In this document: positions 2,402-37,567 of the stretch, piece after piece
Numbering within the stretch: the stretch's first letter is position 1
Layout of the letters: the number at the start of each line of letters is the position of its first letter
IMG/VR virus record: IMGVR_UViG_3300042889_001503
Location: 1-64,000 of that record
Strand: one strand, 5' to 3'
DNA length: 64,000 nucleotides
Translations under genes and position numbers: made by a program
The notes under the pieces: generated by a model
Database searches by the model: none
The model's input: only the letters and a program-made list of their open reading frames with translations
Told to the model about the DNA's origin: nothing

Positions 2402-3214
2402 ATGAAAAAACTATATTTCTTAAATGAAGAAGAAAAAAATAGAATTTTAAATCTTCACGAAAGTGCCACAAAACGACAATATTTAAGTGAGCAAATTCCA
2501 TTTGGACCTCAAATACCACCAAACCCATATAAGACAGCCCTTGATAATATGAAAGGTAATGCGAATTGGGAAGGAAAATATTCTTGTGTTCCTAGCCAAG
2601 GGGTTAAACCAACCAAATTAAAAGATGGGTCAACTATGTATATTATTAATGGTGTAAAATACTATAGTAATGGTAGAAAAAAAATGGCTGACGGTAAAAT
2701 GTTAAATTATGCTTGTGAGACGGAATTTATTAAAGAAGGTGAACGACAAACAAATATTACAAAAGTTTATTGTAGTGTTAAAAATGGGATGATAACAACC
2801 GGAAGTCTTAAAAATTCACCATGGAACGACTATGTTAAATCTTTTAAAATAACTAGTCAAGAAATAGAAACGGCTAAAAAATCTTGTCCTAAAACTAATA
2901 AAACTAAACAAAGTTCTGGTAATAGACAACAAATTATTTCTCAAACAGAAAATAACACAAAGGCAATTCAGAAATTATTAAAGTTACCTGAAACGGGGAT
3001 TATGGATACAACATTATTACAAAAAATTAATGAAGTGTTAAATGGTGGGGGACAACAAGCTCAACCAAGACCTCAAGTTGAACCAATCCAACAACTGACT
3101 CCGGCAGGTGTTAAAACACAACAATTAACAACTATGTCTCCGGAACAATTAACCGCAGGGTTGCAACAAATGCAACAAAAAGCTGCCGCTGCAACCGCAG
3201 GATTAAAACGATAA
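2402..3214 (+). CDS. putative internal virion protein with shared N-terminal leader and weak PG-binding-like segment
   Basis: Leader EEEKNRILNLHESATKRQYLSEQ; segment KAIQKLLKLPETGIMDTTLL; TATTTAT at 2381. Confidence 0.7.
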   Translation: MKKLYFLNEEEKNRILNLHESATKRQYLSEQIPFGPQIPPNPYKTALDNMKGNANWEGKYSCVPSQGVKPTKLKDGSTMYIINGVKYYSNGRKKMADGKMLNYACETEFIKEGERQTNITKVYCSVKNGMITTGSLKNSPWNDYVKSFKITSQEIETAKKSCPKTNKTKQSSGNRQQIISQTENNTKAIQKLLKLPETGIMDTTLLQKINEVLNGGGQQAQPRPQVEPIQQLTPAGVKTQQLTTMSPEQLTAGLQQMQQKAAAATAGLKR

Positions 3215-3223
3215 TATATAAAG

Positions 3224-3871
3224 ATGAAAAAAGTTATATTAGAAGAAATTGAAAATATGAAATACCTTTTGGGGTATAAAAGAGGTGTTGTTATTTCTGA
3301 ACAAGAAGAAAAAAATGATTTGATTGATAAATACTCAACTAAATCAATATCAAATTCTATCGATTCAGGTGATTACTCAAATCTTGACCCAAGAGTTGCT
3401 GATGCAATTAAACAATCTCAGAATATGGTTGGTGGACAATCTATTTTACCTAACTCAACTTCAGGAACTACGTCAGGAACTACGTCAGGAACTACTTCAG
3501 GAACTACGTCAGGAGCAACAACTCCGGCACCATCAACCCCTGCAACACCAATAAAAATCGGTGTAAAATATCCATCAATAATGGAATTACAAAATTCATT
3601 AAATACTAAATTTCAATCAGGATTAACTCCGGATGGTATGTATGGACCTAAAACCTCATCAAGTATTTTAGCAGCATTAACAAAAACATCAACAACAACC
3701 ACCGCAAATACGACACCGGTAAATACTGTTGTTGGTGGTGACGCATCATCTGAAGCGATTAAAAAAACCGCTGAGGCAAATGCTTCAATATCTAAAGGTG
3801 TTGTTGCTAATGCACCAAAACCGGCAGCAAATTCTAATTTTGCTGAAGTAGACGGTGGTGATTTTACATAA
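3224..3871 (+). CDS. putative internal virion protein with leader, SGTT repeats and PG_binding_1-like domain
   Basis: Leader EEIENMKYLLGY..ISEQ; segment ELQNSLN..LTPDGMYGPKT. Confidence 0.7.
   Translation: MKKVILEEIENMKYLLGYKRGVVISEQEEKNDLIDKYSTKSISNSIDSGDYSNLDPRVADAIKQSQNMVGGQSILPNSTSGTTSGTTSGTTSGTTSGATTPAPSTPATPIKIGVKYPSIMELQNSLNTKFQSGLTPDGMYGPKTSSSILAALTKTSTTTTANTTPVNTVVGGDASSEAIKKTAEANASISKGVVANAPKPAANSNFAEVDGGDFT
3461..3520 (+). repeat. 12-bp tandem repeat (TCAGGAACTACG, about 5 copies) encoding SGTT
   Basis: Directly visible in the sequence. Confidence 0.95.
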
Positions 3872-3897
3872 AATATAAACAATAAAAAATAAAAAAA

Positions 3898-4335
3898 ATG
3901 AAAAATTTATTCAACAGTATTTCTCAAGAAGAAAAAAATAGAATACTTGAGATGCACTCAGGTAAAAAAAATGTAATATCTGAACAATCTGAACACGGAA
4001 AAGGGGCGATTATTCCTGAACCTAAAAAAAATAAAGTTGCAACACCACAGATGTTAGATAAAGTTTTAAAAAAACTTAATTATGATATTGAAACAGGGGG
4101 TTCTAAATTAAAATTTATGAAAAATATACCTGAAAAAAAATTAACTTTATTTGTTACTTTTACTCCGGAATATGCGATTGTTAATAAGAAAAAAGATAAA
4201 GAACCAACTCAAACAGGAACTGATGGTAAAATTCACGGAATGGGATTAGCGATTCCAGCTGAAAAGTTTCCTTTATTGTTGAAACCTAATACTCTAAAAG
4301 AATTTGAAAAATTTCTTATGAGTTGTGAAAAATAA
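3898..4335 (+). CDS. putative internal virion protein with shared leader
   Basis: Leader SQEEKNRILEMHSGKKNVISEQ. Confidence 0.7.
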   Translation: MKNLFNSISQEEKNRILEMHSGKKNVISEQSEHGKGAIIPEPKKNKVATPQMLDKVLKKLNYDIETGGSKLKFMKNIPEKKLTLFVTFTPEYAIVNKKKDKEPTQTGTDGKIHGMGLAIPAEKFPLLLKPNTLKEFEKFLMSCEK

Positions 4336-4337
4336 TA

Positions 4338-4367
4338 AAAAAAAGAGGACTATTTGTCCTCTTTTTT
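4338..4367. terminator. bidirectional terminator between convergent genes
   Basis: A run-GAGGAC-TATTT-GTCCTC-T run. Confidence 0.85.
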
Positions 4368-6395
4368 CTTTCTACTCTTTTTTACCTCTTCCGGTTTAAC
4401 TACCACTTCTTTCTCTACGGAGATAAGGGTGTATGGAACACCCTCCACCATATTTCCTTTGATAATCTCTTCGGACACAAAATCCTCAATTTTATCTTGG
4501 ATTGCTCTTTTGATTGGTCTAGCCCCGTAGGTCTCATCAAATCCAACTTCAGATATTAGTTCTAAAATAGTTTCATCAAATGTGATGTCATATTTCAACC
4601 CAACTAGTCTGTTGGATAATTTATCCAATTCCAATTTAACAATTTTCTTAACGTCTTCCTTAACCAAAGAATTAAAGATAACTACCTCATCAATTCTGTT
4701 TAAGAATTCCGGAGTAAAAAATTTCTTAAGTTCTTTTTTAAGTGTCTCACGTTTGTATTCTTCTTCCACATAAGAACTAGCACCTGTTTTGAAACCAACC
4801 CCTGAACCAAAATCTTGTAATTTTTTAGCTCCAACATTAGATGTCATAATGATGACACAATTTTTGAAGTTAATCTTTCTCCCCATACCATCGGTAAGGT
4901 GACCGTCGTCTAATACTTGAAGAAGTGTTGAGAAGATATCTTTGTTTGCTTTCTCAATCTCATCAAATAGAATTACAGAATAAGGTTTGTTTTTCACCTG
5001 TTCAGTTAATTGTCCCCCCTCATCGTATCCAACGTATCCCGGAGGTGCACCAATCAATCTTGAAATGGTGTGTTTCTCTTGGTATTCAGACATATCCACA
5101 CGAATCATATTATCTTCACTACCAAACATTTGTTTCGCTAGTTGTTTTGCCAAGTATGTTTTACCCACACCTGTTGACCCTAAGAAGATGAATGAACCGA
5201 TTGGTTTGTTCGGGTCCTTGATACCAATTCTATTTCTACGGATTGACTTTGCAATCTTTGAAACAGCTTCTGCTTGTCCAATTACTTTATCAGATAGATT
5301 CGCCTCCATCTCAGATAATAGTTTGGTTTCATCTGCATTTAATTTGGTTACCGGGATTTTAGTCATATTGGAAACAACCTCATAAACTAAATCAAGGGTG
5401 ATAACTTTCTTGTGAGTAAGAAGTTCTTCCTCAAACTTTTTCTTTTCAGTCTCAAGTTTAGTTAAGATACGTTTTTCTTTATCACGTAGGTTTGCTGCCT
5501 CTTCATATCGTTGTTGTTTTACAACGTCCACCTTTTCTTGTTTGATGTCGGCAGCTTGTTGTTTCAACTTCTCGATTGATTCCGGCATTTTAATTTCCAC
5601 TTGACTTCTCGCTCCAACCTCATCGATGATGTCAAACCCTTTGTCCGGGAATTCTCTATCGGTGATGTATCTGTCGGCTAAGTCAACACATACTGACAAT
5701 ACTTCATCCGTATAAGTTACCTTATGGAAGTTCTCGTATTTGTCTTTTACGTTTTTAAGGATTTCTAAAGTTTCAGCTTTGGTTGCTGAATCCACAACAA
5801 CTTTTTGGAAACGTCTTTCTAACGCTCCGTCCTTCTCAAAGTTTTTTCTATACTCATCCAAGGTTGTTGCTCCAACACATTGAATCTCCCCACGGGCAAG
5901 TGCCGGTTTAAAGATGTTTGATGCGTCCATTGAACCTGATGAATTTCCTGCACCAACTATGGTGTGGATTTCGTCAATGAATACGATGATGTTTGGTGCG
6001 TTTTGAAGTTCTTCGATGATTACTTTCATTCTTTCTTCAAATTGTCCACGGTATTTGGTTCCGGCAACAATTGATGTCATATCTAAGGATACGATACGTT
6101 TGTCCATTAAGTTTCTTGGACATTCCCCATTATAAATCATAATGGCAAGACCTTCAACGATTGCGGTTTTACCACAACCAGGTTCACCAATGATTATTGG
6201 GTTATTTTTCTTTCTACGTGAAAGGATTTGAGCAATTCGAGTAATTTCTCTTTCTCTACCAATAACCGGGTCAAGTTTACCCTCTTCGGCAAGTTTTATC
6301 AAATCTCTACTAAAATTGTCTAATACGGGTGTTGATGAGTCAGTCTTAACTGCTTTATTACCACCATTACTTCCACCATCCATAGATTCTGTCAT
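4350..6395 (-). CDS. clpC: ClpC-like AAA+ ATPase lacking the N-terminal domain
   Basis: Two Walker A motifs ([16 protein letters not shown]), [17 protein letters not shown], a UVR-like middle domain ([12 protein letters not shown]) and a VGF ClpP-docking loop. Confidence 0.9.
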
Positions 6396-9288: not shown

Positions 9289-9698
9289 TGAGTTATTTAA
9301 TATATGTTAATGAATTAGGTCCTAATTATAAAGGTGATAACATATATGAATTTATTTTCTCGGATAGTTCAGAAGACGTTTGGGGTGAATCTTGGGAATC
9401 AAAACCGTCTAACGGTTACCCACTCCCACCGGACATAGAACACATAAAAACAGTAGGAGTTTTGAAGAATGACCAAATCACAATGTCAGTAATTCAAAAC
9501 TCTGACTATTTTTCGATGATAGATTCAATGGATGATATAATCGCATTATGTTGGGAAAACGAAAGTGAAGACGTTGATTTCACACGTCAAAGAAGATTGG
9601 TGTTTAAGTTTGGAGAAACAGAACAATCAGTCAAAGATAAATTATACGAAAGAGATATCGTATTAGAGTTTGAAAAAAAAATCGAATATGAACACTAA
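9288..9698 (+). CDS. hypothetical protein
   Basis: ORF overlapping the upstream stop (TAATG). Confidence 0.75.
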   Translation: MSYLIYVNELGPNYKGDNIYEFIFSDSSEDVWGESWESKPSNGYPLPPDIEHIKTVGVLKNDQITMSVIQNSDYFSMIDSMDDIIALCWENESEDVDFTRQRRLVFKFGETEQSVKDKLYERDIVLEFEKKIEYEH

Positions 9699-10626
9699 TC
9701 AAAAAAAATTAAAACTAGTGAAGGAGGGAATTAAAGCGTCTACTCTAAATAAAATGACTGATAGTCAGGTTGATGTGTTGTTCAGTAAATTACAAGAACA
9801 AGTTAGTACGGTAACTGAACCTGCTAAAACAGGATATAAAGTTGGTGATAAAGGTGGTAATTTACCTGCAACACCTAAAGGGTATAATGTAAAGAAAAAT
9901 CCTGATGGGACTATTCTTGCAACCCCTAACGAACAAGACAATACTTTAAATGTTGTCCAAGACCCTGACGCGACTGAGGACGGTATGGGTATGTTTGAAG
10001 AAAAAGAAATTGATGAAAAATTTGAATCAAAAAAACAACAAAAATATTTCTTCGCTAAATGTGGTGATGGAAAAACAAAAGAACAAAAAAAATGGTGTAA
10101 AATGGCTGATGAGTTTGCTGAAAAGACTAACTTTGCCAAACTTCCTGAAAAGAAAAAAGAAACCAAAGAAGGTTATGATGATATGGTTGGTGGGGCTTTA
10201 AATAAAATTGCTCAATCCAAATTAAGTCAGGTAAAACCAAGTGTTACTATGGGAGAAAGTAAAATTGAAAAAGAAATTATGAGACTTGTAGAAAAACACA
10301 TTACACCAAAAATGTCTAAAAAAGATTTTAATAATCTTTTAGAAGGAGACACAAAGACAGCTCCGGCGAAACCAAAGGTTAGTCCTGGTACAAAACCAAA
10401 ACATCCATTCCAACCGGACCCTGATAAAAAAGGAGCTCCTAAAGCAAAAAAAAGAGTGATGGATGAGGATACAAAAACTGCACCGGCAAAACCAAAAGTT
10501 AATCCGGGAACAAAACCAAAACATCCTTTTGCTCCGGACCCAAGTAAACAAGGTGCTCCAAAAGCAATTAAAAGAGAATTACCAAGTTTTTTAAAATTCA
10601 ATCAGTTAGGACTTAAAACAAAATAA
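9688..10626 (+). CDS. Lys/Pro-rich protein with duplicated 33-aa peptide (start moved to MNTNQ)
   Basis: The ATG at 9688 overlaps the end of the previous gene; DTKTAPAKPKV.PGTKPKHPF.PDP.K.GAPKA occurs twice. Confidence 0.75.
   Translation: MNTNQKKLKLVKEGIKASTLNKMTDSQVDVLFSKLQEQVSTVTEPAKTGYKVGDKGGNLPATPKGYNVKKNPDGTILATPNEQDNTLNVVQDPDATEDGMGMFEEKEIDEKFESKKQQKYFFAKCGDGKTKEQKKWCKMADEFAEKTNFAKLPEKKKETKEGYDDMVGGALNKIAQSKLSQVKPSVTMGESKIEKEIMRLVEKHITPKMSKKDFNNLLEGDTKTAPAKPKVSPGTKPKHPFQPDPDKKGAPKAKKRVMDEDTKTAPAKPKVNPGTKPKHPFAPDPSKQGAPKAIKRELPSFLKFNQLGLKTK
10348..10566 (+). repeat. direct repeat, two copies of about 99 bp with 120-bp period
   Basis: Copies at 10348-10446 and 10468-10566. Confidence 0.85.
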
Positions 10627-10628
10627 TT

Positions 10629-12017
10629 ATGAGCGTAAATTTAAAAATGGAAAAAATATTGAAAGCCAAAAGTGACTTAGATAAAAAATTAGTTAATGAA
10701 GGGTTAACCAATAATCAAACAACTATGTTGAACGAAATTAATCGTCGTTTAAATGAGGCTCCTGTTAGTTATGATGGTCCTGAAAGAATGGAACCGGGTA
10801 TTGAAAGACAAATTAATCAAAGAGAAACCCCATATAAAGAACATCCAGCATTACCACAAGATGGTGATAGAGATTTCATTGAAATGATTACCTCTCAACG
10901 ATTTAAAGACTCTGTAGACAAAGTAAGAAGATTTTTAGGTGATACTACACCAATTCAGGGAAATAATCCAATGATGGGACTAATGAGTTCTGTAATGGGT
11001 AGTTTACAACAAATTAAAAGAGTTGAAGTTCAAAACAAAGAATATCTTGAAAACTTGGCAGTTGATTTAGTTAAAAAAGAATTAGGTATTCCTGAAGGTC
11101 AATTACAGTTTGAGGTTGAATTAGTTAATGGACCAATGGGAGCGTCTGAAGGAATGCAAACACAACCGGAACAACCGGACGAAGAAGATGTCGAAGAAGC
11201 ATTCAAAGAAAGCGAAGAACACCAAGAAGAAATAGAAGACTTTATGGATTCTATGGAAAAATTCAATTTAGAGAAAGCAAAAAGAAGAATGATTAATTCA
11301 TTAGTTCAAGGAGCGGCATTTAAAGGTGGACATATGTATACATTAGTTAGTGACGAGATAAATAGATTAAGTCCAAACTTACTAAACCTATATGGTGTTA
11401 CACAATCATTGATGGAACACTTATATTGGTTATATCCGGATATGGAAAATATGGCCGGTGGTGGAGGTGGTCAAATGGGACAATCAGAATCTGACCCTGA
11501 AACTGACCCACCAACAATTAAAGCGAAAGCATTTACATTCCCTTTATTAGTTCACGAAATAGTTAAAGGTATTTATTCATTATATGGTGACCAAGGATTA
11601 CCAAACGACCCTGTTCAAAGAAGTATGGTTGTCGGTGCTGAGGATACATTACCAGCAGAAATATGGGATTCAAGATTAGGTCCAATATTTTGGGAAAAAT
11701 TCAGAGATTCTTGGCCTGATAAATTATATGAAGACGACCAAAGACACCTTCAACAATACTTATTTATGAAATTGTCTCAATTAGAGGCGAAAGATTTTAT
11801 TGTATTAGCGAAAGCCATTATGGCTGATAAACCTGAAGCAAAAGAGGTAATAAATAGAATGGTTGCAGAAATCGTTGAAATCCTTAAAAACCACGAGTAT
11901 GAATCAAAAATGTCTGATGACGAAGATGATGAAGACGATAGTGAAAATTATGGTGATTACGGATTTGATGACTTAGATGACTTAGATGATATTGATTTAT
12001 CTTCGTTAGGATTCTAA
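10629..12017 (+). CDS. hypothetical protein upstream of terminase
   Basis: 462-aa ORF with an acidic C-terminus. Confidence 0.8.
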   Translation: MSVNLKMEKILKAKSDLDKKLVNEGLTNNQTTMLNEINRRLNEAPVSYDGPERMEPGIERQINQRETPYKEHPALPQDGDRDFIEMITSQRFKDSVDKVRRFLGDTTPIQGNNPMMGLMSSVMGSLQQIKRVEVQNKEYLENLAVDLVKKELGIPEGQLQFEVELVNGPMGASEGMQTQPEQPDEEDVEEAFKESEEHQEEIEDFMDSMEKFNLEKAKRRMINSLVQGAAFKGGHMYTLVSDEINRLSPNLLNLYGVTQSLMEHLYWLYPDMENMAGGGGGQMGQSESDPETDPPTIKAKAFTFPLLVHEIVKGIYSLYGDQGLPNDPVQRSMVVGAEDTLPAEIWDSRLGPIFWEKFRDSWPDKLYEDDQRHLQQYLFMKLSQLEAKDFIVLAKAIMADKPEAKEVINRMVAEIVEILKNHEYESKMSDDEDDEDDSENYGDYGFDDLDDLDDIDLSSLGF

Positions 12018-17017: not shown

Positions 17018-17020
17018 TAT

Positions 17021-19432: not shown

Positions 19433-19436
19433 TATT

Positions 19437-26979: not shown

Positions 26980-27696
26980 ATGAACTTCGGTATATTAAAA
27001 ACAAAAATAGAAAGAGTGTTGTTAGAATCATACGCTAACGACACATTTAAAGACGAAATAAAAAATTTCAAAAAATATGTTTTAGAAAACAAAAACATAA
27101 GTAAATTATTTTATTTATACGATGAATTAAATTCTCCAAAAGCATTAAGTGAATCTTACGCCAGAGAGTTTATTAACGAAAGTATTAAAATGTATGAGAA
27201 CACAATCAATAAAATCAAGCAATCTGATTTAAATAAAATAAAATCTTGGGTTGGTAATAAACAGATAGAGAATCAATATGAGACTATCGATACGTTGTTT
27301 TCTTCAGATATATTAACGATTGAATCTAAAATTAAATGTAGAAACATTCTGTCAGAATCTCTTAGAAAATTACCGGTGGTGAAAACAGAAGGGATTGATT
27401 TACCGTTAACAACAATGGTAAGTGTTGCAAACAAAACTATTAAAAGTTATATTGATGGTTTAACTGAATCTGACAAAAAAGAATTAATGTCTTTATTGTC
27501 TGAAGATGATTCAACATTGAATGAAAAATACGTTACACTTAAAGAAGGTGTAGTTACGAAACTAACGGAAATGAAGAATGCTAGCACTGATTCAACAATG
27601 CAAATAAGAATTGAGGATACTATCTCAAAAGTAATTTCTGAAAAATACGACAAACTTACGTACTTCAAACTTAAAAACCTTAAAGAAAATCTTTAA
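26980..27696 (+). CDS. hypothetical head-module protein
   Basis: ORF after the portal gene, with TATTTATAAATA upstream. Confidence 0.75.
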   Translation: MNFGILKTKIERVLLESYANDTFKDEIKNFKKYVLENKNISKLFYLYDELNSPKALSESYAREFINESIKMYENTINKIKQSDLNKIKSWVGNKQIENQYETIDTLFSSDILTIESKIKCRNILSESLRKLPVVKTEGIDLPLTTMVSVANKTIKSYIDGLTESDKKELMSLLSEDDSTLNEKYVTLKEGVVTKLTEMKNASTDSTMQIRIEDTISKVISEKYDKLTYFKLKNLKENL

Positions 27697-28475: not shown

Positions 28476-29201
28476 ATGAATTTAAGAATATTACAACCAA
28501 GTGAATCAGGGAAAGGTATATTAGTTGAATACGATGCTGGGTATATTAACCCAAATGATAATCGTAACGAAACATTAATTAGAGAATCTAGCGAAACTCT
28601 TGACCACACTAAACCAATTGAGTTTTATGCCGTATTACAAAAATATGATACCCCTAATAGAAATGGTAGATTATATCCTGAACGTATATTAAAAAGAGAG
28701 GCGGAGAATTATAAAAAAATGATTAAAAAGGGAACAGCCCTATCCGAGTTAAATCACCCGGAATCATCTTTAATCGATTTAGATAGAGTTTCTCACGCAA
28801 TCACCGAAGTATGGTGGGAAGGTAATGTCCTAATGGGTAAAATAAAACTACTTACATCACCGGGATATCACGAAAGTGGTATTTGTTCAACCAAAGGTGA
28901 CTTAGCAGCTAACTACCTAAGACAAGGAGTTACATTAGGTATCTCATCAAGAGGTGTAGGTTCCCTTAAAAAGATTGGTGAACAAAATGAAGTTCAAGAC
29001 GATTTTGAATTAATCTGTTTTGATTTAGTATCATCACCATCAACCCCGGGAGCGTATCTATTCTTAAATAAAGAGGATAAACAACTATACGATGAGAACT
29101 TAGAAGAAGAGAAAAAAATGAGTGTTGAGAGACACGTTGGTGATTCCGGAAATAAATCGCTTGACTTAATGAAAAAATTAAACGATTATTTGGGTTACTA
29201 A
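28476..29201 (+). CDS. prohead core protease (T4 gp21-like)
   Basis: NRNGRLYP, ELNHP, SHAI, GISSRGVGSL, DLVSSPSTPGAY. Confidence 0.92.
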   Translation: MNLRILQPSESGKGILVEYDAGYINPNDNRNETLIRESSETLDHTKPIEFYAVLQKYDTPNRNGRLYPERILKREAENYKKMIKKGTALSELNHPESSLIDLDRVSHAITEVWWEGNVLMGKIKLLTSPGYHESGICSTKGDLAANYLRQGVTLGISSRGVGSLKKIGEQNEVQDDFELICFDLVSSPSTPGAYLFLNKEDKQLYDENLEEEKKMSVERHVGDSGNKSLDLMKKLNDYLGY

Positions 29202-29592: not shown

Positions 29593-31104
29593 ATGGCAAA
29601 AGAAAAATCTTTAGTTGAAGAGGCTATCATCCAAATGAAAAACTTGGAAGAAGCGGTAGCTGAAAATGCAAAAGGAATACTTGCTTCTACAATGAAACAA
29701 GAAATCAAAGACCTAGTAAAAGAATCTCTAACTGAACAAGACGAGATTAACCCTGATGACGTTGAAGTGGATGAACCTATGGGTTCTGATGATATTGCCG
29801 ATATTGATATGGGTGATGATTCAGATGAAGAAGGTGATGAAATGGATACTGATGATACTGATGACGAAGAAGATATGGACTTTGGTGACGAAGAAGATAT
29901 GGACGACGAGGAAGACACTATTGACTTAACTGACGCAGACGATGAAGAAGTACTTAGAGTATTTCAACTTATGGGTCCGGATGACAACATTGTCGTAACA
30001 AAAGACGACAAAGGAAACACTCACCTTAAAGATGAGGAAACCGGTAAAGAGTATATGATTGTTGGTGAAAGTGAAGAAGAAGAATTTGAAATGTCTGAAG
30101 AATGGGACGAAGAACTTGAAGAAGATGAGATGGGTGACGAATCTATTGAATCAATCGTTGAGAGAATGTTCGGTTCTGATGATGAAGACGAAGACGAAGT
30201 GGAATTTGATTTTGAAGAGTTTGACGAATCTGATGATATGGACGATGAAGAAATCGTTTATGAAATCGAAATGGATGAAGAAGACGAAGAAGAATTAGGT
30301 GAAGAAGAAATGGATGATGAATCTATTACTGAAGCTAAAATGTCTATCAAACCAAAAGGTGTTGGGATGGGTAATCAATCAAAATTTAAATTTAACAAAT
30401 CACCTAATCAAGGAACAGGATTTAAAACTAAAATGAAAGAGGCTCCAAAATCTGTAGGAACAGGTAAAGCGAAATTCGAGTATAAAGAAGGTGAAAATTC
30501 AGGAACTAAATTAGGAACAAACAAAGTTGTTAAGAAAACTGAAACAAAAGAAGGTTCAACTAGAAAACCAATGGTTAAAAAAGTTGAAGGTAAAAAAGAA
30601 GAGACAAAAGAGGCTGTAAGAACTTTAGGTTCAGGGTCTAACTTTAGAAAAGGTGGTTTACCAAAACCAAGAGCTCATTCAAGTTTTAATACTGCTATCA
30701 AAGAAAGTAACACTAATTCAGAGTTACAAGTTCTTAGAGAAAAAAACGAAGAATACAGAAAAGCACTTAATGTTTTCAGAAGTAAATTAAACGAGGTTGC
30801 AATCTTCAATTCAAACTTGGCTTACGCTACACGTTTGTTCACTGAACATTCAACATCAAAACAAGAAAAAATTAACATTTTAAGAAGATTTGATGGTGTT
30901 GAAACTATCAAAGAATCTAAAAATCTATATCAGGTCGTTAAAAATGAATTATCCTCAGGAACTAAAACTCAAACTATGAACGAGTCAATTGAAAGAACAA
31001 TCGCAAAATCACCTTCTACAGGAGCGGTTAACTTACTTGAATCAAAAACATATGAGAATCCACAGTTCTTAAGAATGAAAGATTTAATGGCAAAAATAAA
31101 ATAA
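29593..31104 (+). CDS. prohead scaffold/core protein (gp22-like)
   Basis: Lies between protease and MCP; very acidic middle; coiled-coil NEVAIFNSNLAYATRLF; C-terminal FLRMKDLMAKIK. Confidence 0.8.
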   Translation: MAKEKSLVEEAIIQMKNLEEAVAENAKGILASTMKQEIKDLVKESLTEQDEINPDDVEVDEPMGSDDIADIDMGDDSDEEGDEMDTDDTDDEEDMDFGDEEDMDDEEDTIDLTDADDEEVLRVFQLMGPDDNIVVTKDDKGNTHLKDEETGKEYMIVGESEEEEFEMSEEWDEELEEDEMGDESIESIVERMFGSDDEDEDEVEFDFEEFDESDDMDDEEIVYEIEMDEEDEEELGEEEMDDESITEAKMSIKPKGVGMGNQSKFKFNKSPNQGTGFKTKMKEAPKSVGTGKAKFEYKEGENSGTKLGTNKVVKKTETKEGSTRKPMVKKVEGKKEETKEAVRTLGSGSNFRKGGLPKPRAHSSFNTAIKESNTNSELQVLREKNEEYRKALNVFRSKLNEVAIFNSNLAYATRLFTEHSTSKQEKINILRRFDGVETIKESKNLYQVVKNELSSGTKTQTMNESIERTIAKSPSTGAVNLLESKTYENPQFLRMKDLMAKIK

Positions 31105-31136: not shown

Positions 31137-33008
31137 ATGGGAGCATTATTAGAATCAGGATTAGTTGGTAACATCGGGTTAAAACACCTTAAAGTTATCA
31201 AAGAAGACACAATCAACAAATGGGATAAATTAGGATTCCTAGAAGGTCTTAAAGGACACATGAGAGAAAACGTAGCTCAGTTATATGAGAACCAAGCGTC
31301 TTTCTTAATAAACGAAGCTACAGGTGAAGGTTCAAACGGTTCATTCGAAACGGTTGTATTCCCTATCGTAAGAAGAGTATTCTCTAAATTACTTGCGAAT
31401 GAAATCGTATCAGTACAAGCTATGAACTTACCAATCGGTAAATTGTTCTTCTTCGTACCTAAAATTCAAGGTTACCAATCAGGTCAAGAAACTATCTTAG
31501 GAACTCAATTAGGTGGTGGTACTCACTACGGACCAATTGGTGCGGCTGATGGACAAACTGCGGCTGATGGTCAATCAGGAGCTGGTTACACAGGAGCAAA
31601 CGCATTCAAGAAAAATCTTTATGATTTATTCTATGAAGGAAACGAAGGTCAATTAGACCCTCCAGGATTGTTTGACTACTCTAAAGGACAATGGTCGGCA
31701 GTTACTAAACCAACAACAGTTATGGTTTGGTCAAATGGTAGTTTAGTTGTTGCTGACGCAACTGCATTAGCTAACCAATTCAATGGAAAAAACATTAGAA
31801 AAGTAATCGTAGCATTATCAGGATTCACAACTGCTGGTACAGGTAAATTAATCGGACCAGACGGTAATGAAGTTGATACTGAAACTTTCTTATCTGATTT
31901 AAGAATCTACAGTGATTCTACAACTGCATGGACTTCAACAACATCACCTTGTAGTGTTGTAAGTGGGTCTACCGGAATAAACTCATTATTGTTTAGAGTT
32001 GTTACTCAACAATATGGTGAAGGTATCGTTTCAGGATTAAACGGAAGAGGAACTACATCATTTGCAACTACAGGTAATAACGGTACTTACAATGATACTT
32101 GTTCTCCTGCAGGAATCATCTACTTAGAAGTTGATTTATCTTGTCCAACTTGTCCTTCTTGTGGTGACACATTAGACGGTTATACAGGAACAACTATCGG
32201 AGTATTACCATCAACTGGGTTTACTGCTGTTTACAGACGTTACGCTGATATGGAATTTGAAGATAAAATCGGTGAGGTTTCTTTCGAATTAGATTCAGTT
32301 ACTGTATCTGTTACAGAAAGAAAATTAAGAGCACAATGGTCTCCTGAGTTAGCTCAAGACGTTGCAGCTTTCCACAACATCGATGCTGAGGCTGAATTAA
32401 CAGCTTTATTATCTGAACAAGTTGCGGCTGAAATCGACCGTGAAATCTTAAGAGATTTACGTAAAGGTGCGGCATGGAACTTACGTTGGGATTACAATGG
32501 TTGGAGAAGAATCTCTTCAACAACAAACTATACACAAAAAGATTGGAACCAAACTTTGATTACTGCAATTAACCAATTGTCAGCACAAATCCACAAATCT
32601 ACTTTAAGAGGTGGAGCTAACTGGATTGTAGTATCTTCTGAGGTTTCAGCGATTATGGATGACTTAGAATACTTCCACGTATCTAATGCTTCACCTGAAC
32701 AAGACCAATATAATATGGGTATTGAAAGAGTTGGAACATTAGCAGGACGTTACCAAGTATATCGTGACCCTTACTTCCCAGCTAACCAAGTGTTAATTGG
32801 ACACAAAGGAACATCGTTACTTGATACAGGATACATCTACGCTCCGTATGTACCATTACAATTAACACCTACAATGTACAACCCATTCAACTTTACACCG
32901 ATTAAAGGTATAATGACTCGTTACGCGAAAAAGATGGTGAATAATAGATTTTACGGCAGAATTACTGTAGATGGTGTTAGAACATTCGATTTAAGAGAAT
33001 TGAGATAA
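31137..33008 (+). CDS. major capsid protein (T4 gp23-like)
   Basis: FPIVRRVF..L.A..IVSVQAM, RKLRAQWSPELAQDV.AFH.IDAEAEL, EIDREI, GYIYAPYVPL, GIMTRYA. Confidence 0.95.
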   Translation: MGALLESGLVGNIGLKHLKVIKEDTINKWDKLGFLEGLKGHMRENVAQLYENQASFLINEATGEGSNGSFETVVFPIVRRVFSKLLANEIVSVQAMNLPIGKLFFFVPKIQGYQSGQETILGTQLGGGTHYGPIGAADGQTAADGQSGAGYTGANAFKKNLYDLFYEGNEGQLDPPGLFDYSKGQWSAVTKPTTVMVWSNGSLVVADATALANQFNGKNIRKVIVALSGFTTAGTGKLIGPDGNEVDTETFLSDLRIYSDSTTAWTSTTSPCSVVSGSTGINSLLFRVVTQQYGEGIVSGLNGRGTTSFATTGNNGTYNDTCSPAGIIYLEVDLSCPTCPSCGDTLDGYTGTTIGVLPSTGFTAVYRRYADMEFEDKIGEVSFELDSVTVSVTERKLRAQWSPELAQDVAAFHNIDAEAELTALLSEQVAAEIDREILRDLRKGAAWNLRWDYNGWRRISSTTNYTQKDWNQTLITAINQLSAQIHKSTLRGGANWIVVSSEVSAIMDDLEYFHVSNASPEQDQYNMGIERVGTLAGRYQVYRDPYFPANQVLIGHKGTSLLDTGYIYAPYVPLQLTPTMYNPFNFTPIKGIMTRYAKKMVNNRFYGRITVDGVRTFDLRELR

Positions 33009-33030
33009 TCAAAATCTTAAAATATTTAAC

Positions 33031-33103: not shown

Positions 33104-33784
33104 ATGAAGAAAATACTATTAGAAAAATCAGTTGTTGATGAAATTTTGAGATTATATAATGATGAGATGTTAGGCTCTCCATCTATATCTGAAAAATTAA
33201 ATATTAACAAACAAGTTGTGTTACGAACATTAAAAGAAAATGGTGCTATTGTCGGTATCTCCGGTAGAAAATATAAGGGTGGGAAATCTGAATCAGATAA
33301 ACGACATTATCTTAAAAATAGAGAAAAACGATTACAATATTTTTCTGATTGGCAAAAAGATAATAGAGACCGTCTAAATGATTACCATCAAAAATGGAGA
33401 GAAAAAAATATTGATAAACATAGAGAATATAAACGTAAGTATGAAAAACATCGTAAAGATACTGACCCCCTCTATAAACTAATCACCAATTTCAGAACTG
33501 CAATATGGACAGTATTAAAAGAAAGTAATGTAGACAAATATGGACATTACTTTGATGTTCTACAATATAGTCCGGAGGAATTGATTAATCATTTAGAAAA
33601 ACAATTTAAGGATGATATGACGTGGGATAACTATGGAATTTGGCACGTGGACCATAAACTACCAATTACATCTTTTGATATACAAGAGATGGGTGACGAG
33701 GAATTTATGAGATGTTGGTGTTTGGATAACCTTCAACCAATGTGGGGTGAGGAGAATATTCGTAAATCAAATAAAGTTTTTTAA
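33104..33784 (+). CDS. HNH endonuclease (free-standing, homing-type)
   Basis: WHVDHKLP...NLQPMWGEENIRKSNK; N-terminal HTH-like segment; basic helical linker. Confidence 0.8.
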   Translation: MKKILLEKSVVDEILRLYNDEMLGSPSISEKLNINKQVVLRTLKENGAIVGISGRKYKGGKSESDKRHYLKNREKRLQYFSDWQKDNRDRLNDYHQKWREKNIDKHREYKRKYEKHRKDTDPLYKLITNFRTAIWTVLKESNVDKYGHYFDVLQYSPEELINHLEKQFKDDMTWDNYGIWHVDHKLPITSFDIQEMGDEEFMRCWCLDNLQPMWGEENIRKSNKVF

Positions 33785-33814
33785 ATACTGAGGTATTTAT
33801 ATAAAAAGAAAAAT

Positions 33815-34957
33815 ATGAACAATTTATTTGAGATATCGAGTGAGGAAAGAAGTAGAATATTAAATCTTCACGAGAGTGCAACAAAACGACAATATTTAAC
33901 GTTAGAACAGGTTGTTCAACCCCAATATCATTCGACAACTACATCAAAATCGACTAACACTACTTTTCCGGTTCAAAATGTTGGTGATAAATTTGCTTAT
34001 GGTCAGGTTGATTCTCCAAATGTTAAGTCAAAAATAATTTCATTAAAACCTCAAATTGATAAATTTATCAAGGATGATGGTGGTAAAAATTTTGTTATAA
34101 CTATTACTGCAGGGGAATCTAATGTTACGAATCCAAAAGGATTTGAAGAAAAGGGTAGTTTAGCATTGGCGAGAGCTAATTCTGTGAAAGGGTATTTTGA
34201 AGAAGTATTTCAAGATTTAATTAAAAATGGTGTTTTAACTATTAAAGTTCCTACAGATGTTAGTCAAGTATCTTTAGGTAAAACACCATATGATAAGACT
34301 AAAGGTGATAATAAAAATCCTGATAAGATTAAATTATATAGTGGTGAGCAATTTGTAAACTTTACTATCACAGGTAGTGGTTCAAAGTGTAATTTTGTTT
34401 TAGATGTTGAAGCTGGTCAAGGGGACCCTAATTTAGATTATGTAACAACTGATGAGATTTTAGAAGGTAAAGGGGAAGTTACATTTACTCCGGGACAGAT
34501 TCCGGATAGATTGGTTATTATGGATAGTCAGGGTAAAATAGAAACGGACACAGGGTATATTACGGGTGACGTTAGTAAATACCCGGATTGGAAATATACT
34601 CCACTATATGTTTATCTTTTAACTTTGGTAAGTCAAACTAACCCGGTTGCGGTTTCAGGTAGTGAAATATTAACGATAACAGTTACAGATTATGCTGATT
34701 TGGTTAAACAATTATTGAATGACCCCAATTCACGTAGTTATCAAAAAATGGGTAGTGAGATAGAACCGGGGTTAAAAGCTATGGCGGGTATGATTAAAAA
34801 AGGGCGAACAGAGTTTGTTATTTATAAATTATCGAATGCGGGAACCACAGTTCAATTTGATTCACCAAATAATGATAAAAAAATCAAAGTATATTCACCT
34901 ATTGGAACCGGAACAATTAAAACAGGTTACGGGTTAGTAGGTCGTTGTATTAATTAA
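33815..34957 (+). CDS. putative internal virion protein with shared leader and OmpA-C-like segment
   Basis: Leader EERSRILNLHESATKRQYLTLEQ; AGES.V.N....LALARANSVKGYF. Confidence 0.65.
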   Translation: MNNLFEISSEERSRILNLHESATKRQYLTLEQVVQPQYHSTTTSKSTNTTFPVQNVGDKFAYGQVDSPNVKSKIISLKPQIDKFIKDDGGKNFVITITAGESNVTNPKGFEEKGSLALARANSVKGYFEEVFQDLIKNGVLTIKVPTDVSQVSLGKTPYDKTKGDNKNPDKIKLYSGEQFVNFTITGSGSKCNFVLDVEAGQGDPNLDYVTTDEILEGKGEVTFTPGQIPDRLVIMDSQGKIETDTGYITGDVSKYPDWKYTPLYVYLLTLVSQTNPVAVSGSEILTITVTDYADLVKQLLNDPNSRSYQKMGSEIEPGLKAMAGMIKKGRTEFVIYKLSNAGTTVQFDSPNNDKKIKVYSPIGTGTIKTGYGLVGRCIN

Positions 34958-35198
34958 TTCGTTTTGAACTAATTAACTCATAAGTTAATTTATTATCTTT
35001 TGCGTAGGCAATATAGGTTTTGATAGTATCGTTTTTAGTAATTTTCATTATAGAAAAAACTTTTTTGTTATAAACTTTAGATAACGAATCCATCAAGACG
35101 TTGGCATCTTTGTCAATGTCTTTTGTTTTTGGTTTAACTTGAGCCACAGAGGTTAATGTTCCGATAAGTAATAACGATAATAAGAATAACTTTTTCAT
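34950..35198 (-). CDS. small secreted protein with Sec signal peptide
   Basis: MKKLFLLSLLLIGTLTSVA|Q; Bacteroidetes promoter upstream. Confidence 0.7.
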   Translation of the reverse strand: MKKLFLLSLLLIGTLTSVAQVKPKTKDIDKDANVLMDSLSKVYNKKVFSIMKITKNDTIKTYIAYAKDNKLTYELISSKRIN

Positions 35199-35249: not shown

Positions 35250-35260
35250 ATTTTTATATA

Positions 35261-35286: not shown

Positions 35287-35495
35287 TCTTTTTTGGCGGT
35301 TACTCTAATTGCTTTTGATAATACTTCACATTCTCCTAATGAGAATATTCCGGATTGATATGCGTATTTAACGGCTTGGGTTAGATAGTATATTCCGTGT
35401 TCTTTATCCATAGTTTCAAGTATGGCATCTAAGTGTTCTTCAGATTGGATTGGTATTGATTCAAATAGCTTTCCGAATAATTGAGGTTCTTCCAT
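35271..35495 (-). CDS. hypothetical protein (74 aa, start MEEPQLF)
   Basis: The upstream extension in the track is antisense to the 35526 gene; the ATG at 35495 has an A-rich leader. Confidence 0.65.
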   Translation of the reverse strand: MEEPQLFGKLFESIPIQSEEHLDAILETMDKEHGIYYLTQAVKYAYQSGIFSLGECEVLSKAIRVTAKKEKDVE

Positions 35496-35525
35496 TTTTT
35501 TAATTTGTTTGATATTTATAAGTAT

Positions 35526-36755
35526 ATGAACAAAAATAACAAAATACAGATTAAAGAGGCTACCGGAGAGAGTGGAACTAGAGGTTCGTTTATAGCACCT
35601 CTTCAAGTGGGTATTAGAAAATTCAAAAAATCTCAAATGGGTCCGTTTACGACATCGGTATCTAAGTATGATAATCCTGAATTGGAATTTGATAGTTATG
35701 ATGGTTCGATGGATGAAACAAAGAAACAGATTAAGAAGATAGAGGGGAAGGCAAGAAAGGTAACTAATTATATGACGAAACACCCTGATTCGACCAATAG
35801 TGATGAAGAGGGTAACAACATTAATCAAACACCCGGTAAGAAAAATTTAAAAGTTGTTCCAATTAAAGAAAATACGTTGGCTAGTAATGCCGGTGAATAC
35901 AATGGTCCAATTGAGTTAGGATTAAAAAAATGGAGAAAGACTGAATTATTTCCTTTTAGTATTGATGTTGATAATCACCATAATAAAAAAGCTAAAGGTA
36001 AACATATAAAAAATAATGTTGAACGTGTTATTGGTATGTGGGAGAAAGGTGTTGACGGAAGTTATGATATAGACACACACGACGTTCATACGGTTAAAGA
36101 ATGGGTTGAGATAACCGAAGGCACCATATTGGGAGATATTGTCCCAAATGGACTAAAAATGTCCTCTAATTACGACAGAGTTATTGATAAGTTTAGAAAG
36201 GATATTCCTGAGGATAAAATGAAGGAATATGATTTGATTTCTGAGAAGATAAAAGATTTTGTTCAAGATAGGGGATATGTTATAAAAGTATTGAATTCTT
36301 GTAACACCGGATTTAAAGGGGTTAGAACAAATAAGGCAATTATTTTATGTTCACCTGAAATGTTTCCAAATTTTGCATCATTTGTTTATATTTTATTCCA
36401 CGAATTAAGGCACGAACAACAGATGAGTGAATTTGATTTGAAGGATTCCTATATGGGGGATATTGAGGATTTTGAGGAATTTTATAAAATCTATTGGGAT
36501 ATGGAAATGGATGCCGATAATTACGGTAAGGATTGGGTTAAAAAAATTGGTGATGTGTTAAAATTGCCTGAGGATGTTTATTATCTAGATAATATGATTA
36601 AAAATTATCCATCAATGTCAAATATGGTTAGACAAATGACATCACACCTACACAGAGAAATACAAACCTTAAAGAGTCGAGGAATGACGTATACGGACAT
36701 TAGTGACTTGGATATCGTTAAGAAACACTTACAGAGTCTTGAAGATATGTTTTAA
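35526..36755 (+). CDS. modular protein with internal repeat and C-terminal HExxH metalloprotease-like domain
   Basis: FHELRHEQQ..EMDAD; two IKE..G...P...G..K..K....PF units; TATTTAT at 35513. Confidence 0.7.
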   Translation: MNKNNKIQIKEATGESGTRGSFIAPLQVGIRKFKKSQMGPFTTSVSKYDNPELEFDSYDGSMDETKKQIKKIEGKARKVTNYMTKHPDSTNSDEEGNNINQTPGKKNLKVVPIKENTLASNAGEYNGPIELGLKKWRKTELFPFSIDVDNHHNKKAKGKHIKNNVERVIGMWEKGVDGSYDIDTHDVHTVKEWVEITEGTILGDIVPNGLKMSSNYDRVIDKFRKDIPEDKMKEYDLISEKIKDFVQDRGYVIKVLNSCNTGFKGVRTNKAIILCSPEMFPNFASFVYILFHELRHEQQMSEFDLKDSYMGDIEDFEEFYKIYWDMEMDADNYGKDWVKKIGDVLKLPEDVYYLDNMIKNYPSMSNMVRQMTSHLHREIQTLKSRGMTYTDISDLDIVKKHLQSLEDMF

Positions 36756-36759
36756 ATAA

Positions 36760-36788
36760 CAAACCCCTACTCAACAGTGGGGGTTTTT
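36760..36788. terminator. bidirectional terminator
   Basis: AAACCCCTAC-TCAACA-GTGGGGGTTT between convergent genes. Confidence 0.75.
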
Positions 36789-37210
36789 GATTTAATTAAG
36801 ATTCTATTCTTTAATTTTGATAATGAATGTTCCACTTGGGATTTCATTTGTTCAATACGTTGCATTCTATTTTGTTGCACTTTGTTATCATACATATTGG
36901 ACATTTTCTTCCAATCTCTATCAGTAAGGGGGATATTACTATAATAACAAACGTGATTGATTATTGTAATTTTTTTATCGTCTAAGATAATGAATACACC
37001 TAATTTTTTATTTTCTATAATTCTATGGTCAGATAGTGGAGCAATTTCATAAATGGAATTGGAATGTCGTAAGACATTACGGAAAATAAATTTACAATCA
37101 TTGATATCCGCCAATCTTCCCGGGTCAACAACATCGTATAATATCTGTAACTCTAATAGTTTCTTTCTAACAGCTCTACGTTTTAATTTTCGTTTTATGT
37201 ATTTTATCAT
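36767..37210 (-). CDS. hypothetical protein
   Basis: ORF; TATCTTTG (minus strand, 37231-37238) upstream. Confidence 0.7.
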   Translation of the reverse strand: MIKYIKRKLKRRAVRKKLLELQILYDVVDPGRLADINDCKFIFRNVLRHSNSIYEIAPLSDHRIIENKKLGVFIILDDKKITIINHVCYYSNIPLTDRDWKKMSNMYDNKVQQNRMQRIEQMKSQVEHSLSKLKNRILIKSKTPTVE

Positions 37211-37288
37211 ATCTTTAGTGAATTATCGGACAAAGATACGTAAAAATTTTATATATAAAAAAATAATTTGATAAAAAAAAGGAGAAAA

Positions 37289-37567
37289 TTAAATTCCTCC
37301 TTTATTTTTTGCTTTATCTAAGTAGTCATAAGCTCTATCTCCATACATTTCATATATTTTTTTGAAGAATTGTGCGGGGTTTTTTCTTATGTATCTAAGA
37401 ACATCATTTGGGATATACGAACCGTATTTGTCACCAAAGATTGATTTGACTTGTCTCTCTCTATCACTCGTTGGTCTATTAACATCGGATGAGTAATCTT
37501 GTTCAGACATTACTTTTTTAATAATGTTTGATAAATCTGATTCTGAAAGTTTAACTACCTTACCCAT
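37289..37567 (-). CDS. small protein with leader-like N-terminus
   Basis: MGKVVKLSESDLSNIIKKVMSEQ. Confidence 0.7.
   Translation of the reverse strand: MGKVVKLSESDLSNIIKKVMSEQDYSSDVNRPTSDRERQVKSIFGDKYGSYIPNDVLRYIRKNPAQFFKKIYEMYGDRAYDYLDKAKNKGGI

Follow-up and report, generated by a model that had tools for sequence, protein, structure and literature searches.

Why do proteins encoded at distant points of one phage genome begin with the same kind of short peptide and then have nothing further in common? We analysed a 64,000-nt stretch of an uncultured virus genome (hereafter the window), in which five ORFs open with a helical leader of 22-32 amino acids that ends in (L/I/V/M)-x-E-Q. The leaders fall into three classes.

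Five leaders and their classes

The initial annotation listed ORFs 2402, 3224, 3898, 33815 and 37567- as leader-bearing, and the coordinates and N-termini of all five were verified. Their leaders are the following.

2402..2494, plus strand: class A leader of ORF2402 (ORF 2402-3214), MKKLYFLNEEEKNRILNLHESATKRQYLSE followed by Q
3224..3304, plus strand: class B leader of ORF3224 (ORF 3224-3871), MKKVILEEIENMKYLLGYKRGVVISE followed by Q
3898..3987, plus strand: class A' leader of ORF3898 (ORF 3898-4335), MKNLFNSISQEEKNRILEMHSGKKNVISE followed by Q
33815..33910, plus strand: class A leader of ORF33815 (ORF 33815-34957), MNNLFEISSEERSRILNLHESATKRQYLTLE followed by Q
37499..37567, minus strand: class C leader of ORF37567c (ORF 37289-37567), MGKVVKLSESDLSNIIKKVMSE followed by Q

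Among the window's 139 ATG-ORFs (>=40 aa), seven contain [SL]EQ inside their first 60 residues. Five of these seven are the claimed leaders, in which the motif starts at residue 21-30; the other two have it at residues 42 and 20 and lack the helix pattern. When a profile of the five leaders was run on the window, it found those five only (33-63 bits), and the runner-up scored 11.8 bits in a non-coding frame.

The five ORFs had been described as sharing one common leader. The N-terminal helix with its x-E-Q end is present in each, but leave-one-out profiles resolve three sequence classes. The leaders of 2402, 33815 and 3898 find one another (E 2e-11 to 2e-6), and those of 3224 and 37567 were not found from the other leaders (E >= 10). 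Because these two are undetectable from the rest, we treat them as separate classes. What the separate classes have in common is their N-terminal position, an amphipathic helix and a hydrophobic-S-E-Q end, and nothing else. Within class A, the DNA of the 2402 and 33815 leaders had been called near-identical (2441-2486 vs 33854-33899), and indeed 43 of 46 nt are the same, with all 3 mismatches at synonymous third positions.

The body of ORF2402 combines Cys-pair modules, a PG_binding-like helix pair and a basic Q/P-rich tail in mosaic fashion. In ORF3224 a PG_binding-like segment is accompanied by a T/S/G linker, and aa 69-183 have endolysin PHROG matches. ORF3898 has a small, basic body (pI 9.5), and that of ORF37567c is basic and 70 aa long, its gene being co-transcribed with ORF 37571-38176. 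In ORF33815 the leader is followed by a disordered S/T linker and two domains, one OmpA-like and one beta-rich. Pfam and PHROGs gave almost no matches for the five window proteins; the exceptions were the endolysin-like PG-binding segment of ORF3224 and the leader of ORF3898, which has a weak PHROG match spanning 38 aa. Structure prediction gave the leader as a lone low-confidence helix, then a disordered linker, then a confident OmpA-like body.

Reuse of the leaders and selection on their codons

The class A profile, run against 1.84 billion representatives, matched 1,440 proteins (non-redundant at 50% identity) at E <= 1e-3, and the best 150 of these all aligned at residue 1. A search with the leader only returned 397 proteins; the best 120 of the 397 all have a near-identical 31-aa leader, and the sequence beyond it is unalignable. 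In IMG/VR, 109 leader ORFs across 79 loci form at least 22 body clusters, counted with a coverage rule because single linkage had fused nearly all bodies through common short modules. Classes B and C are each carried by many unrelated bodies in IMG/VR. Thus, the proposal of a portable leader on unrelated cargo holds well beyond the window, with 1,440 profile matches and at least 22 body clusters in a small sample.

The carriers are a group of uncultured freshwater T4-like phages with genomes of ~270-320 kb, and the genome of the window is 272 kb. No match to ORF2402, ORF33815 or the bare leader was found by tblastn in 50,697 GenBank phage records. Scanning cellular genomes for the leader DNA pattern gave 5 matches, none of them leader-like: one was ParB (LLRILNLHEY) in an alphaproteobacterial single-cell genome, and three further matches reached merely 12-13 bits against the leader profile. 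Contigs resembling ORF33815 were present at low depth in four freshwater metatranscriptomes; these are silent on timing, and DNA carry-over is possible.

Comparison with relatives of the window's genome separates the leader from what follows it. The leader codons differ by 7 synonymous and 0 non-synonymous changes from relative 1, and by 5 synonymous and 1 non-synonymous from relative 2, whereas the 93 nt past the leader are random. Similarity between genomes breaks off directly after the E-Q codons. Module shuffling had been suggested for these genes, and a breakpoint exactly 3' of these codons is what we observed. Portability of the leader across unrelated cargo, with module shuffling, is therefore strongly supported. 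The conserved leader DNA may double as a fixed recombination boundary for the swapping of bodies.

A census of class A codons counted 13 synonymous and 0 non-synonymous changes at L28 (P3) and 6 and 0 at E30 (P1), compared with 7 and 18 at S29 (P2). At the protein level, purifying selection on the helix is strong.

The conserved element could instead act as nucleic acid. What is copied from gene to gene would then be a mobile promoter or 5' cassette, or a translational operator, with the peptide as a by-product. T4-type phages have comparable promoter-stem-loop cassettes, and the window does contain promoter-like motifs. The motif TATTTATA precedes 12 starts by 12-41 nt (expected 0.58, P 1e-13), which include those of the portal, protease and scaffold genes, ORF2402, ORF33815 and the ORF37567c operon. 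A gp55-like sigma factor could be the reader of TATTTATA(AATA) promoters, judging from a weak match.

2350..2392, plus strand: terminator-like hairpin (GAGACttcgGTCTC and a T-run), then promoter-like TATTTATAAATA, 10 nt upstream of the ORF2402 start
33794..33801, plus strand: TATTTATA promoter-like motif, beginning 21 nt upstream of ORF33815
38206..38217, minus strand: TATTTATAAATA promoter-like motif upstream of operon 38176-37289, in which the class C leader gene is last
43791..44540, minus strand: weak gp55-like late sigma factor (phrog_234, E 4.5e-4)

A promoter motif just upstream, the 43 of 46 nt shared by two leaders and the similarity breakpoint at the leader end would all suit a nucleic-acid element. 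However, DNA-level conservation irrespective of codon position was not found: changes cluster at synonymous sites, with the core codons free there and almost fixed at non-synonymous ones. The upstream regions of different leader genes are also unlike (18-30 of 40 nt), and three classes unrelated in DNA converge on a hydrophobic-S-E-Q peptide end. We give this explanation hardly any credence.

Protease motif and head-maturation genes

In class A leaders L at P3 and E at P1 are invariant and P2 is free, the pattern at which T4 gp21 cuts. The exception is ORF33815, where P3 is Thr (T-L-E/Q, the slash marking the predicted cut), a point against the propeptide reading; most of its orthologues have I/V/F/M. 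The other leaders end in I-S-E (class A'), M-S-E (class B) and I-T-E (class C), and the residue after the Glu is mostly Gln. The window also encodes the following candidates for head maturation.

26980..27696, plus strand: candidate prohead core protein, between portal and protease, placed as T4 gp67/gp68
28476..29201, plus strand: gp21-family prohead serine protease, the presumed processing enzyme (Peptidase_S77, E 4.9e-24)
29593..31104, plus strand: scaffold-like protein, the presumed docking partner of the leader, between the protease and capsid genes
31302..31319, plus strand: predicted maturation site F-L-I-N-E/A of the gp23-like major capsid protein (31137-33008), aligned with T4 gp23 F-L-T-E/A

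The protease is 35% identical to T4 gp21. The scaffold-like protein (503 aa) is very acidic and has 16 L/I/M-x-E sites, and the candidate core protein has 12 (L/I/M)-x-E sites, mainly L-S-E-S. The leader had also been read as a scaffold-mimicking tag that resembles the scaffold C-terminus, the ORF59867 C-terminus and ORF7936. We could not reproduce this: the scaffold tail does not score with the leader profile, and what the profile gives in these proteins is 0-4 bits off the claimed sites, that is, profile noise.

In T4, the targeting sequence is the sole part shared by the internal proteins (PMC3012670, PMC9026906). This capsid-targeting sequence (CTS), carried by IPI, IPII, IPIII and Alt and removed by gp21, is like the leaders an N-terminal peptide on unrelated proteins with an (L/I)-x-E end. 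Both kinds of phage have a gp21-family protease, a gp23-like capsid protein, here with a propeptide site, and a scaffold core. Both also have their cargo genes in variable loci, which swap bodies and retain the leader (PMC3012670, PMC9026906). However, the T4 CTS has 10 aa (MKTYQEFIAE) and is found on a handful of cargo proteins in T-even phages, whereas the leaders have 22-32 aa, are predicted to form a long helix plus linker, and occur in three classes on >1,400 non-redundant cargo proteins. No sequence similarity to the CTS was detectable, the leader profile scoring <=0 on T4 IPII, IPIII, gp24, gp67 and gp68. This dissimilarity, and a length 2-3 times greater, speak against a propeptide.

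As far as sequence can tell, removal of the leader by a gp21-type protease, together with capsid targeting, is consistent with every test that we ran. The TATTTATA motif, common to leader genes and to the portal, protease and scaffold genes, fits this reading, as does the weakly matched gp55-like sigma factor. The positions of the genes bear on this too. ORF33815 is kept in all relatives, downstream of the capsid gene; one relative has two leader genes directly after the capsid gene, and leader genes of relatives lie within the head module.

Cargo, probable site of action and a model for capsid loading

All recognisable cargo domains bind or remodel peptidoglycan: PG_binding_1, LysM, OmpA-like, YkuD/Tlde1-like, TseH-like and phage lysozyme domains (this census covers ~15% of bodies, and the remainder have no annotation). 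The leaders do not have the hydrophobic core of ~10-15 residues after a basic N-terminus that marks a Sec signal. Their maximal 10-aa hydropathy is <=1.0 and their longest apolar run <=5 residues, compared with hydropathies of 2.9-3.4 and runs of 16-18 in the Sec-like signals of neighbouring genes. Recognisable cargo that acts on peptidoglycan, behind a leader that is no Sec signal, points to the periplasm of the cell just infected as the likely site of action. Known T4 internal proteins have a cytoplasmic destination and counter restriction enzymes, whereas the recognisable cargo here is predicted to target peptidoglycan. Periplasmic delivery of capsid cargo is an extra assumption, which counts against the propeptide reading.

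Cargo that needs access to the wall behind a leader that is not a Sec signal might also be explained by a tag for an intracellular process. The tag could serve the neighbouring ClpB-like unfoldase, or a late non-classical export or localisation for wall remodelling or lysis control. The cassette of leader genes has, without exception, a ClpB-like AAA+ gene and an M20-like peptidase gene at its sides, which would fit. However, 33815, 37567c and the post-capsid leader genes of relatives are distant from the Clp gene, other exported proteins of the same phages use ordinary Sec signals, and the leader motif fits the prohead protease consensus. No export route through a charged helix of this kind is known to us, and we consider an intracellular tag quite improbable.

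A second possibility is that the leader is a permanent, uncleaved docking peptide that ties wall-binding or wall-cutting modules to a virion part (baseplate hub, tail tip or capsid surface), with the linker giving reach to the wall as the tail penetrates. The disordered S/T/P-rich linker past the leader suits such an anchor; a flexible linker fits permanent attachment equally well, which is a point against the propeptide. Peptidoglycan-acting cargo is also expected of virion-associated lysins at tail tips, the class C gene ends its operon beside large minus-strand structural genes, and Cys pairs in some bodies suggest an extracytoplasmic life. On the other side, the leader end is conserved exactly as L-x-E with a free P2, a better fit to a protease site than to a binding surface. 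The leader genes of relatives are located in the head module, and a single fixed site would have to accept >1,000 cargo proteins, several per genome. Permanent docking thus seems unlikely to us.

Based on these sequence comparisons, we lean towards reading the leaders as T4-like capsid-targeting propeptides, longer and more widely reused, on ejected proteins directed at the cell wall. Loading into the capsid for injection is probable because unrelated, often cell-wall-acting proteins carry one peptide with a protease-motif end. We propose that during prohead assembly the leader docks its cargo onto the acidic scaffold or core. Once the shell is closed, the gp21-family protease would cut after the invariant Glu, and an internal L-H-E/S may be an additional cut. 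Cleavage would free the mature cargo within the head. Upon infection, the cargo would exit via the tail, and in the periplasm it could open the wall, anchor to it or modify it.

A broader version of our model, which we offer tentatively, is plug-and-play loading: three interchangeable leaders would bring >1,400 non-redundant, fast-shuffling wall effectors into the capsid for injection into the next host's periplasm, lineage-wide. With similar reserve, we suggest that the effector repertoire may comprise lysozyme, L,D-transpeptidase/Tlde1-like, TseH-like, OmpA-like, LysM and PG_binding modules. In such a system these phages would have their own equivalent of the type VI effector arsenal. Some leader-bearing bodies match the Tlde1, TseH and YkuD domains of type VI wall effectors, and in the proposed reading both systems use a contractile device that delivers into the periplasm of a target cell. 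However, type VI cargo is loaded via Hcp/VgrG/PAAR, whereas we propose a prohead and a cleaved leader, and the effectors would act on the phage's own host; the two systems are alike in cargo type only.

If our model is correct, the T4 capsid-targeting principle is general and heavily used among environmental phages, beyond the T-even coliphages. A leader profile would then pick ejected proteins, a class otherwise almost invisible to annotation, straight from metagenomes. The model would also highlight an under-studied step of infection, in which injected proteins manipulate the cell wall. As a natural, well-defined tag of ~30 aa that brings its own release site, the leader might be tested as a means of packing foreign proteins into phage heads. 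The combination of an invariant leader with hyper-variable bodies is, in addition, a clean system for studying module swapping in phages.

Related principles are known in other phages. In the phiKZ-like giant phages (phiKZ, 201phi2-1, SPN3US), N-terminal propeptides of head proteins are cleaved behind a Glu by a diverged homologue of gp21, and inner-body or ejection paralogues have identical N-termini and a diverged remainder, as we found for the leaders (PMC5694885). Like the leader phages, they are large. Unlike the leaders, their propeptides are usually >100 aa, have the motif (S/A/G)-x-E and are not one leader on hundreds of bodies; phage lineage and scaffold organisation differ as well. 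In P1, the N-terminal 30 residues of DarB suffice to target a reporter to the capsid, in which it can travel to the next host (PMC9024508). This signal is similar in length to the leaders, but DarB is a single cargo in the stepwise Dar assembly pathway, and its signal is not a family-wide leader. Sequence similarity to DarB is presumably absent, the 50,697 GenBank phage records having given no leader match. Last, the conserved Gln at P1' might cyclise and so shield the mature N-terminus.

Distribution of the leader

The five ORFs that carry the leader, a 22-32 aa N-terminal helical peptide ending in hydrophobic-x-E-Q, have the positions and N-termini described in the initial annotation, and its report of near-identical leader DNA in ORF2402 and ORF33815 is also correct: over 46 nt (2441-2486 vs 33854-33899) there are three differing positions, all synonymous. 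A profile of the five leaders, run against the six-frame translation of the window, recovered only these five (33-63 bits), the next best match being one of 11.8 bits in a non-coding frame. The idea of one shared leader held in part. The leaders of ORF2402, ORF33815 and ORF3898 form a single homologous class, A/A' (leave-one-out E 2e-11 to 2e-6), but those of ORF3224 and ORF37567c could not be found from the others and are thus treated as classes B and C. The suggested likeness to the C-termini of the scaffold and ORF59867, and to ORF7936, is not supported, as profile scores were not above noise.

The leader is portable. When residues 1-40 of ORF2402 were searched against 5.8 billion proteins, 397 proteins of 153-410 aa were returned; the best 120 of the 397 all begin MKKLYFL[ND]EEEKNRILN[LI]HESATKRQYL[SG]E[Q], and right after this the sequence is not alignable. 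A class A profile (33 positions, 19 leaders) run against 1.84 billion representatives of 50% identity clusters gave 1,440 matches at E <= 1e-3 and 364 at E <= 1e-10. Among the best 150, all but one start at or before residue 13; the exception starts at residue 32, and such offsets probably reflect differently called start codons. Scanned at the DNA level, IMG/VR gave 104 stretches; the 80 loci fetched contain 109 leader ORFs, frequently two to four a locus. Pooled with sampled database proteins, the leader-bearing bodies (the parts after the leader) form at least 22 clusters, which strongly bears out the claim that a portable leader stands on unrelated proteins. Class A' alone occurs on at least six unrelated bodies, class B (…NMKYLLGYKRGVVISEQ) in 25 distinct proteins whose bodies are of many kinds, and class C (LTESDLxxIIK[KR]VxSEQ) on at least ten bodies, N-terminal in every case. 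Cellular genomes scanned with the leader DNA pattern gave no leader-like match; one candidate was ParB on full reading, and the others scored 12-13 bits against the leader profile. The leader was also absent from the GenBank phages searched.

Selection on the leader and its terminal motif

Compared with two syntenic relatives, the window differs at 7-8 of the 93 leader nucleotides; codon changes are 7 synonymous and none non-synonymous against one relative, and 5 and 1 against the other. Upstream, 40 nt are almost unchanged, and the 93 nt downstream differ at the level of random sequence; thus, the E-Q codon pair is the boundary of conservation. Among 32 unique class A leader DNAs, synonymous/non-synonymous changes numbered 10/0 at I15 and 8/0 at L16, where the search pattern biased codons 14-20, and, at the remaining, unbiased codons, 15/0 at A22, 4/0 at Y27, 13/0 at L28 and 6/0 at E30. 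Residue 29 varies freely (7 synonymous and 18 non-synonymous changes, 14 codons), and Q31 is fixed only in part. This pattern is one of selection at the protein level, which takes the form L-x-E at the leader end. It speaks against the leader being a nucleic-acid cassette, a reading that we consider very improbable.

The window leaders end in L-S-E, I-S-E, I-S-E and M-S-E; ORF33815 differs in ending T-L-E, and its orthologues have mostly I/V/F/M at P3 of the presumed cut, with L-I-N-E-Q among their ends. In their ends the three leader classes converge. In T4, the gp21 protease cleaves behind the Glu of (L/I)-x-E, and N-terminal targeting sequences of 10-20 aa with this motif at their end are present on the internal proteins and Alt; nothing else is conserved across this diverse set of proteins (PMC3012670, PMC5694885, PMC9026906). 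Class A also contains a nearly invariant internal L-H-E|S, which would allow a second predicted cut; second cuts are known for other propeptides (PMC5694885).

We liken the leader to the T4 capsid targeting sequence in its way of working. T4 IPII/IPIII (MKTYQEFIAE) and gp24 (MAKINELLRE) showed no similarity to the leader profile, so the resemblance is functional, not homologous, and the leader is two to three times longer. The P1 DarB signal offers a similar likeness in way of working (PMC9024508), and the leader is reminiscent of the N-termini conserved among diverged paralogues in phiKZ-like phages (PMC5694885). Reuse on the leader's scale is not reported for T-even phages.

Head genes and a probable promoter motif

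At about 32% G+C, the window is AT-rich; it derives from a large T4-like myophage. The same genome is in IMG/VR as a 272-kb contig, where loci L030 and L077 correspond to the leader proteins of the window; syntenic relatives measure 290-317 kb. Among cultured phages, the nearest capsid proteins, those of Flavobacterium phage immuto and Microcystis phage Mel-JY01, are only 39-45% identical, as is that of a 484-kb uncultured phage. Lakes and other freshwater sites are the source of the RNA libraries that contain the sequence.

Head genes and a candidate late sigma factor gene of the window
12039-13808, T4-type large terminase
25071-26957, T4-type portal
28476-29201, gp21-family prohead protease (Peptidase_S77, E 4.9e-24)
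29593-31104, scaffold-like protein, very acidic
31137-33008, gp23-like major capsid protein (E 1.3e-74)
43791-44540 (-), gp55-like late sigma factor, weak match

The protease shares 35% identity with T4 gp21. In an alignment of the capsid protein with T4 gp23, S-F-L-I-N-E|A lies opposite S-F-L-T-E|A, the T4 site being taken from the literature. ORF26980, placed between portal and protease in the slot that core proteins gp67/gp68 occupy in T4, has 12 (L/I/M)-x-E sites, mostly L-S-E-S.

The octamer TATTTATA occurs 28 times; a frequent longer form, TATTTATAAATA, includes the T4 late-promoter consensus TATAAATA. Twelve of the 28 copies precede a correctly oriented start codon by 12-41 nt (expected 0.58, P about 1e-13).

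Positions of TATTTATA(AATA) before structural-gene starts
(+): 2381, 7067, 7897, 25035, 26959, 28453, 29562, 33092, 33794
(-): 38210, 35223, 61175

The genes so marked include those for portal, protease and scaffold, ORF26980, ORF33815, the operon ending in ORF37567c, and ORF2402, the first of three tandem leader genes, which lies behind a terminator hairpin. The motif is likely a late promoter. Sequences like ORF33815 occur in metatranscriptome contigs at low depth, which is uninformative on timing.

The gene order in a 41-kb relative runs protease, scaffold, capsid protein, 226-aa ORF, OmpA-like leader gene and class A leader gene. Its 226-aa ORF matches that at 33104-33784 (+) in the window, which has its own TATTTATA motif and forms an insertion between the capsid gene and ORF33815. 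This 226-aa window ORF resembles, by eye, an HNH-type endonuclease; it had no match in Pfam. The position may be compared with that of the homing endonuclease gene segD, between T4 genes 23 and 24.

Several neighbours deserve description. Two proteins upstream of the terminase gene (10629-12017 and 9670-10626, +) lie outside the leader classes and may be further processed head proteins; possible protease sites follow their N-terminal helices (…INRRLNE|AP and …SKLQE|QV, each at residue 43). Between terminase and portal, 13829-21650 (+) encodes three giant proteins, paralogues in tandem (1062, 803 and 744 aa), with P/T-rich linkers and DUF285 repeat arrays (first: E 3.7e-127), probably host-recognition or fibre proteins. 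The 1040-aa protein at 21884-25006 (+) consists largely of (T/Q/P)-T repeats and had no Pfam match; its C-terminal end (…CLVVNTVITLSDGS…VLTHNK) resembles, by eye, a Hint/intein-type self-cleaving domain. A long sugar-metabolism block (44540-55882, -), where G+C falls to 25% at 52-56 kb, is flanked by PhoH (47275-48036) and dUTPase (55879-56484) genes; Pfam confirmed GDP-mannose 4,6-dehydratase and a DegT-type aminotransferase, and an epimerase/reductase and several glycosyltransferase-like genes were recognized by eye.

Cargo and a model for its delivery

Pfam matches on 115 non-redundant leader proteins nearly all concern peptidoglycan (PG_binding_1 (10), LysM, OmpA, YkuD, Tlde1, TseH and PG_binding_3), the sole exceptions being two domains of unknown function; separate examples have Phage_lysozyme (E 3e-17) and OmpA. 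The cargo has a different functional theme from that of the T4 targeting sequence. Short modules make up the class A bodies in mosaic fashion, namely Cys-pair modules, a PG_binding-like helix pair, linkers of T/A/P and strongly basic tails. AlphaFold modelling of ORF33815 (57-sequence alignment, mean pLDDT 81.6) gave the leader as one low-confidence helix (residues 9-30) with no packing against the body. Over residues 21-43, the helix end and linker, confidence stays below 50; the body is confident, and its first domain matches the periplasmic OmpA-like domains 5nhx and 4erh (E 1.6e-4, probability 1.0).

We propose that the leader would dock cargo on the acidic scaffold or core of the prohead under assembly, that the gp21-family protease would take it off by cutting after the invariant Glu, and that the mature cargo would remain in the head and be ejected at the next infection. 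On balance we lean towards this mechanism as a whole. The cargo is wall-directed and carries no signal for export, so it likely acts in the periplasm of the infected cell. The analysis itself shows the portability, the selection pattern, the terminal motif, the presence of the protease system, the shared promoter motif and the domain content; docking, cleavage, packaging, ejection and the place of action are inferred. The leader points to injected wall-active effectors, and, if the model is true, ejected proteins would become recognizable in metagenomes. Alternatively, the same wall-active modules could be held on tail or capsid by the leader as an uncleaved docking peptide, which we think unlikely.

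In relatives, a cassette between an M20-like peptidase gene and a ClpB-like gene contains three to six genes, the majority with leaders. It is conceivable, if rather improbable, that the leader is an intracellular tag, for example for the adjoining Clp-like unfoldase or for an unknown export route. The leaders lack a hydrophobic core and are therefore not Sec signals; two metzincin-like cassette genes have ordinary Sec signals in their place.

In the window, the full-length two-ring ClpB/ClpA-like AAA+ protein is encoded at 4350-6395 (-; AAA_2, AAA_lid_9, ClpB_D2-small). Its gene is conserved at the cassette edge in all relatives, with the M20/M42-like peptidase (1532-2350) at the other edge, and an SmpB gene lies a few kb upstream in relatives L001 and L002. 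Genes with Sec-type signals adjoin leader genes in the window (34950-35198, -, a small 82-aa protein), L001 (11917-12501) and L002 (13202-13804), and those in relatives include metzincin-like peptidases (Peptidase_M54 in L001); thus, two different N-terminal addressing systems stand side by side in the phage. In the 317-kb L001, a frameshift interrupts a class A leader gene with an L,D-transpeptidase-like body (10623-11875): the leader ORF ends after 60 codons, and from 10802 the body is read in a different frame. An intact counterpart of 410 aa, P0148, occurs elsewhere.
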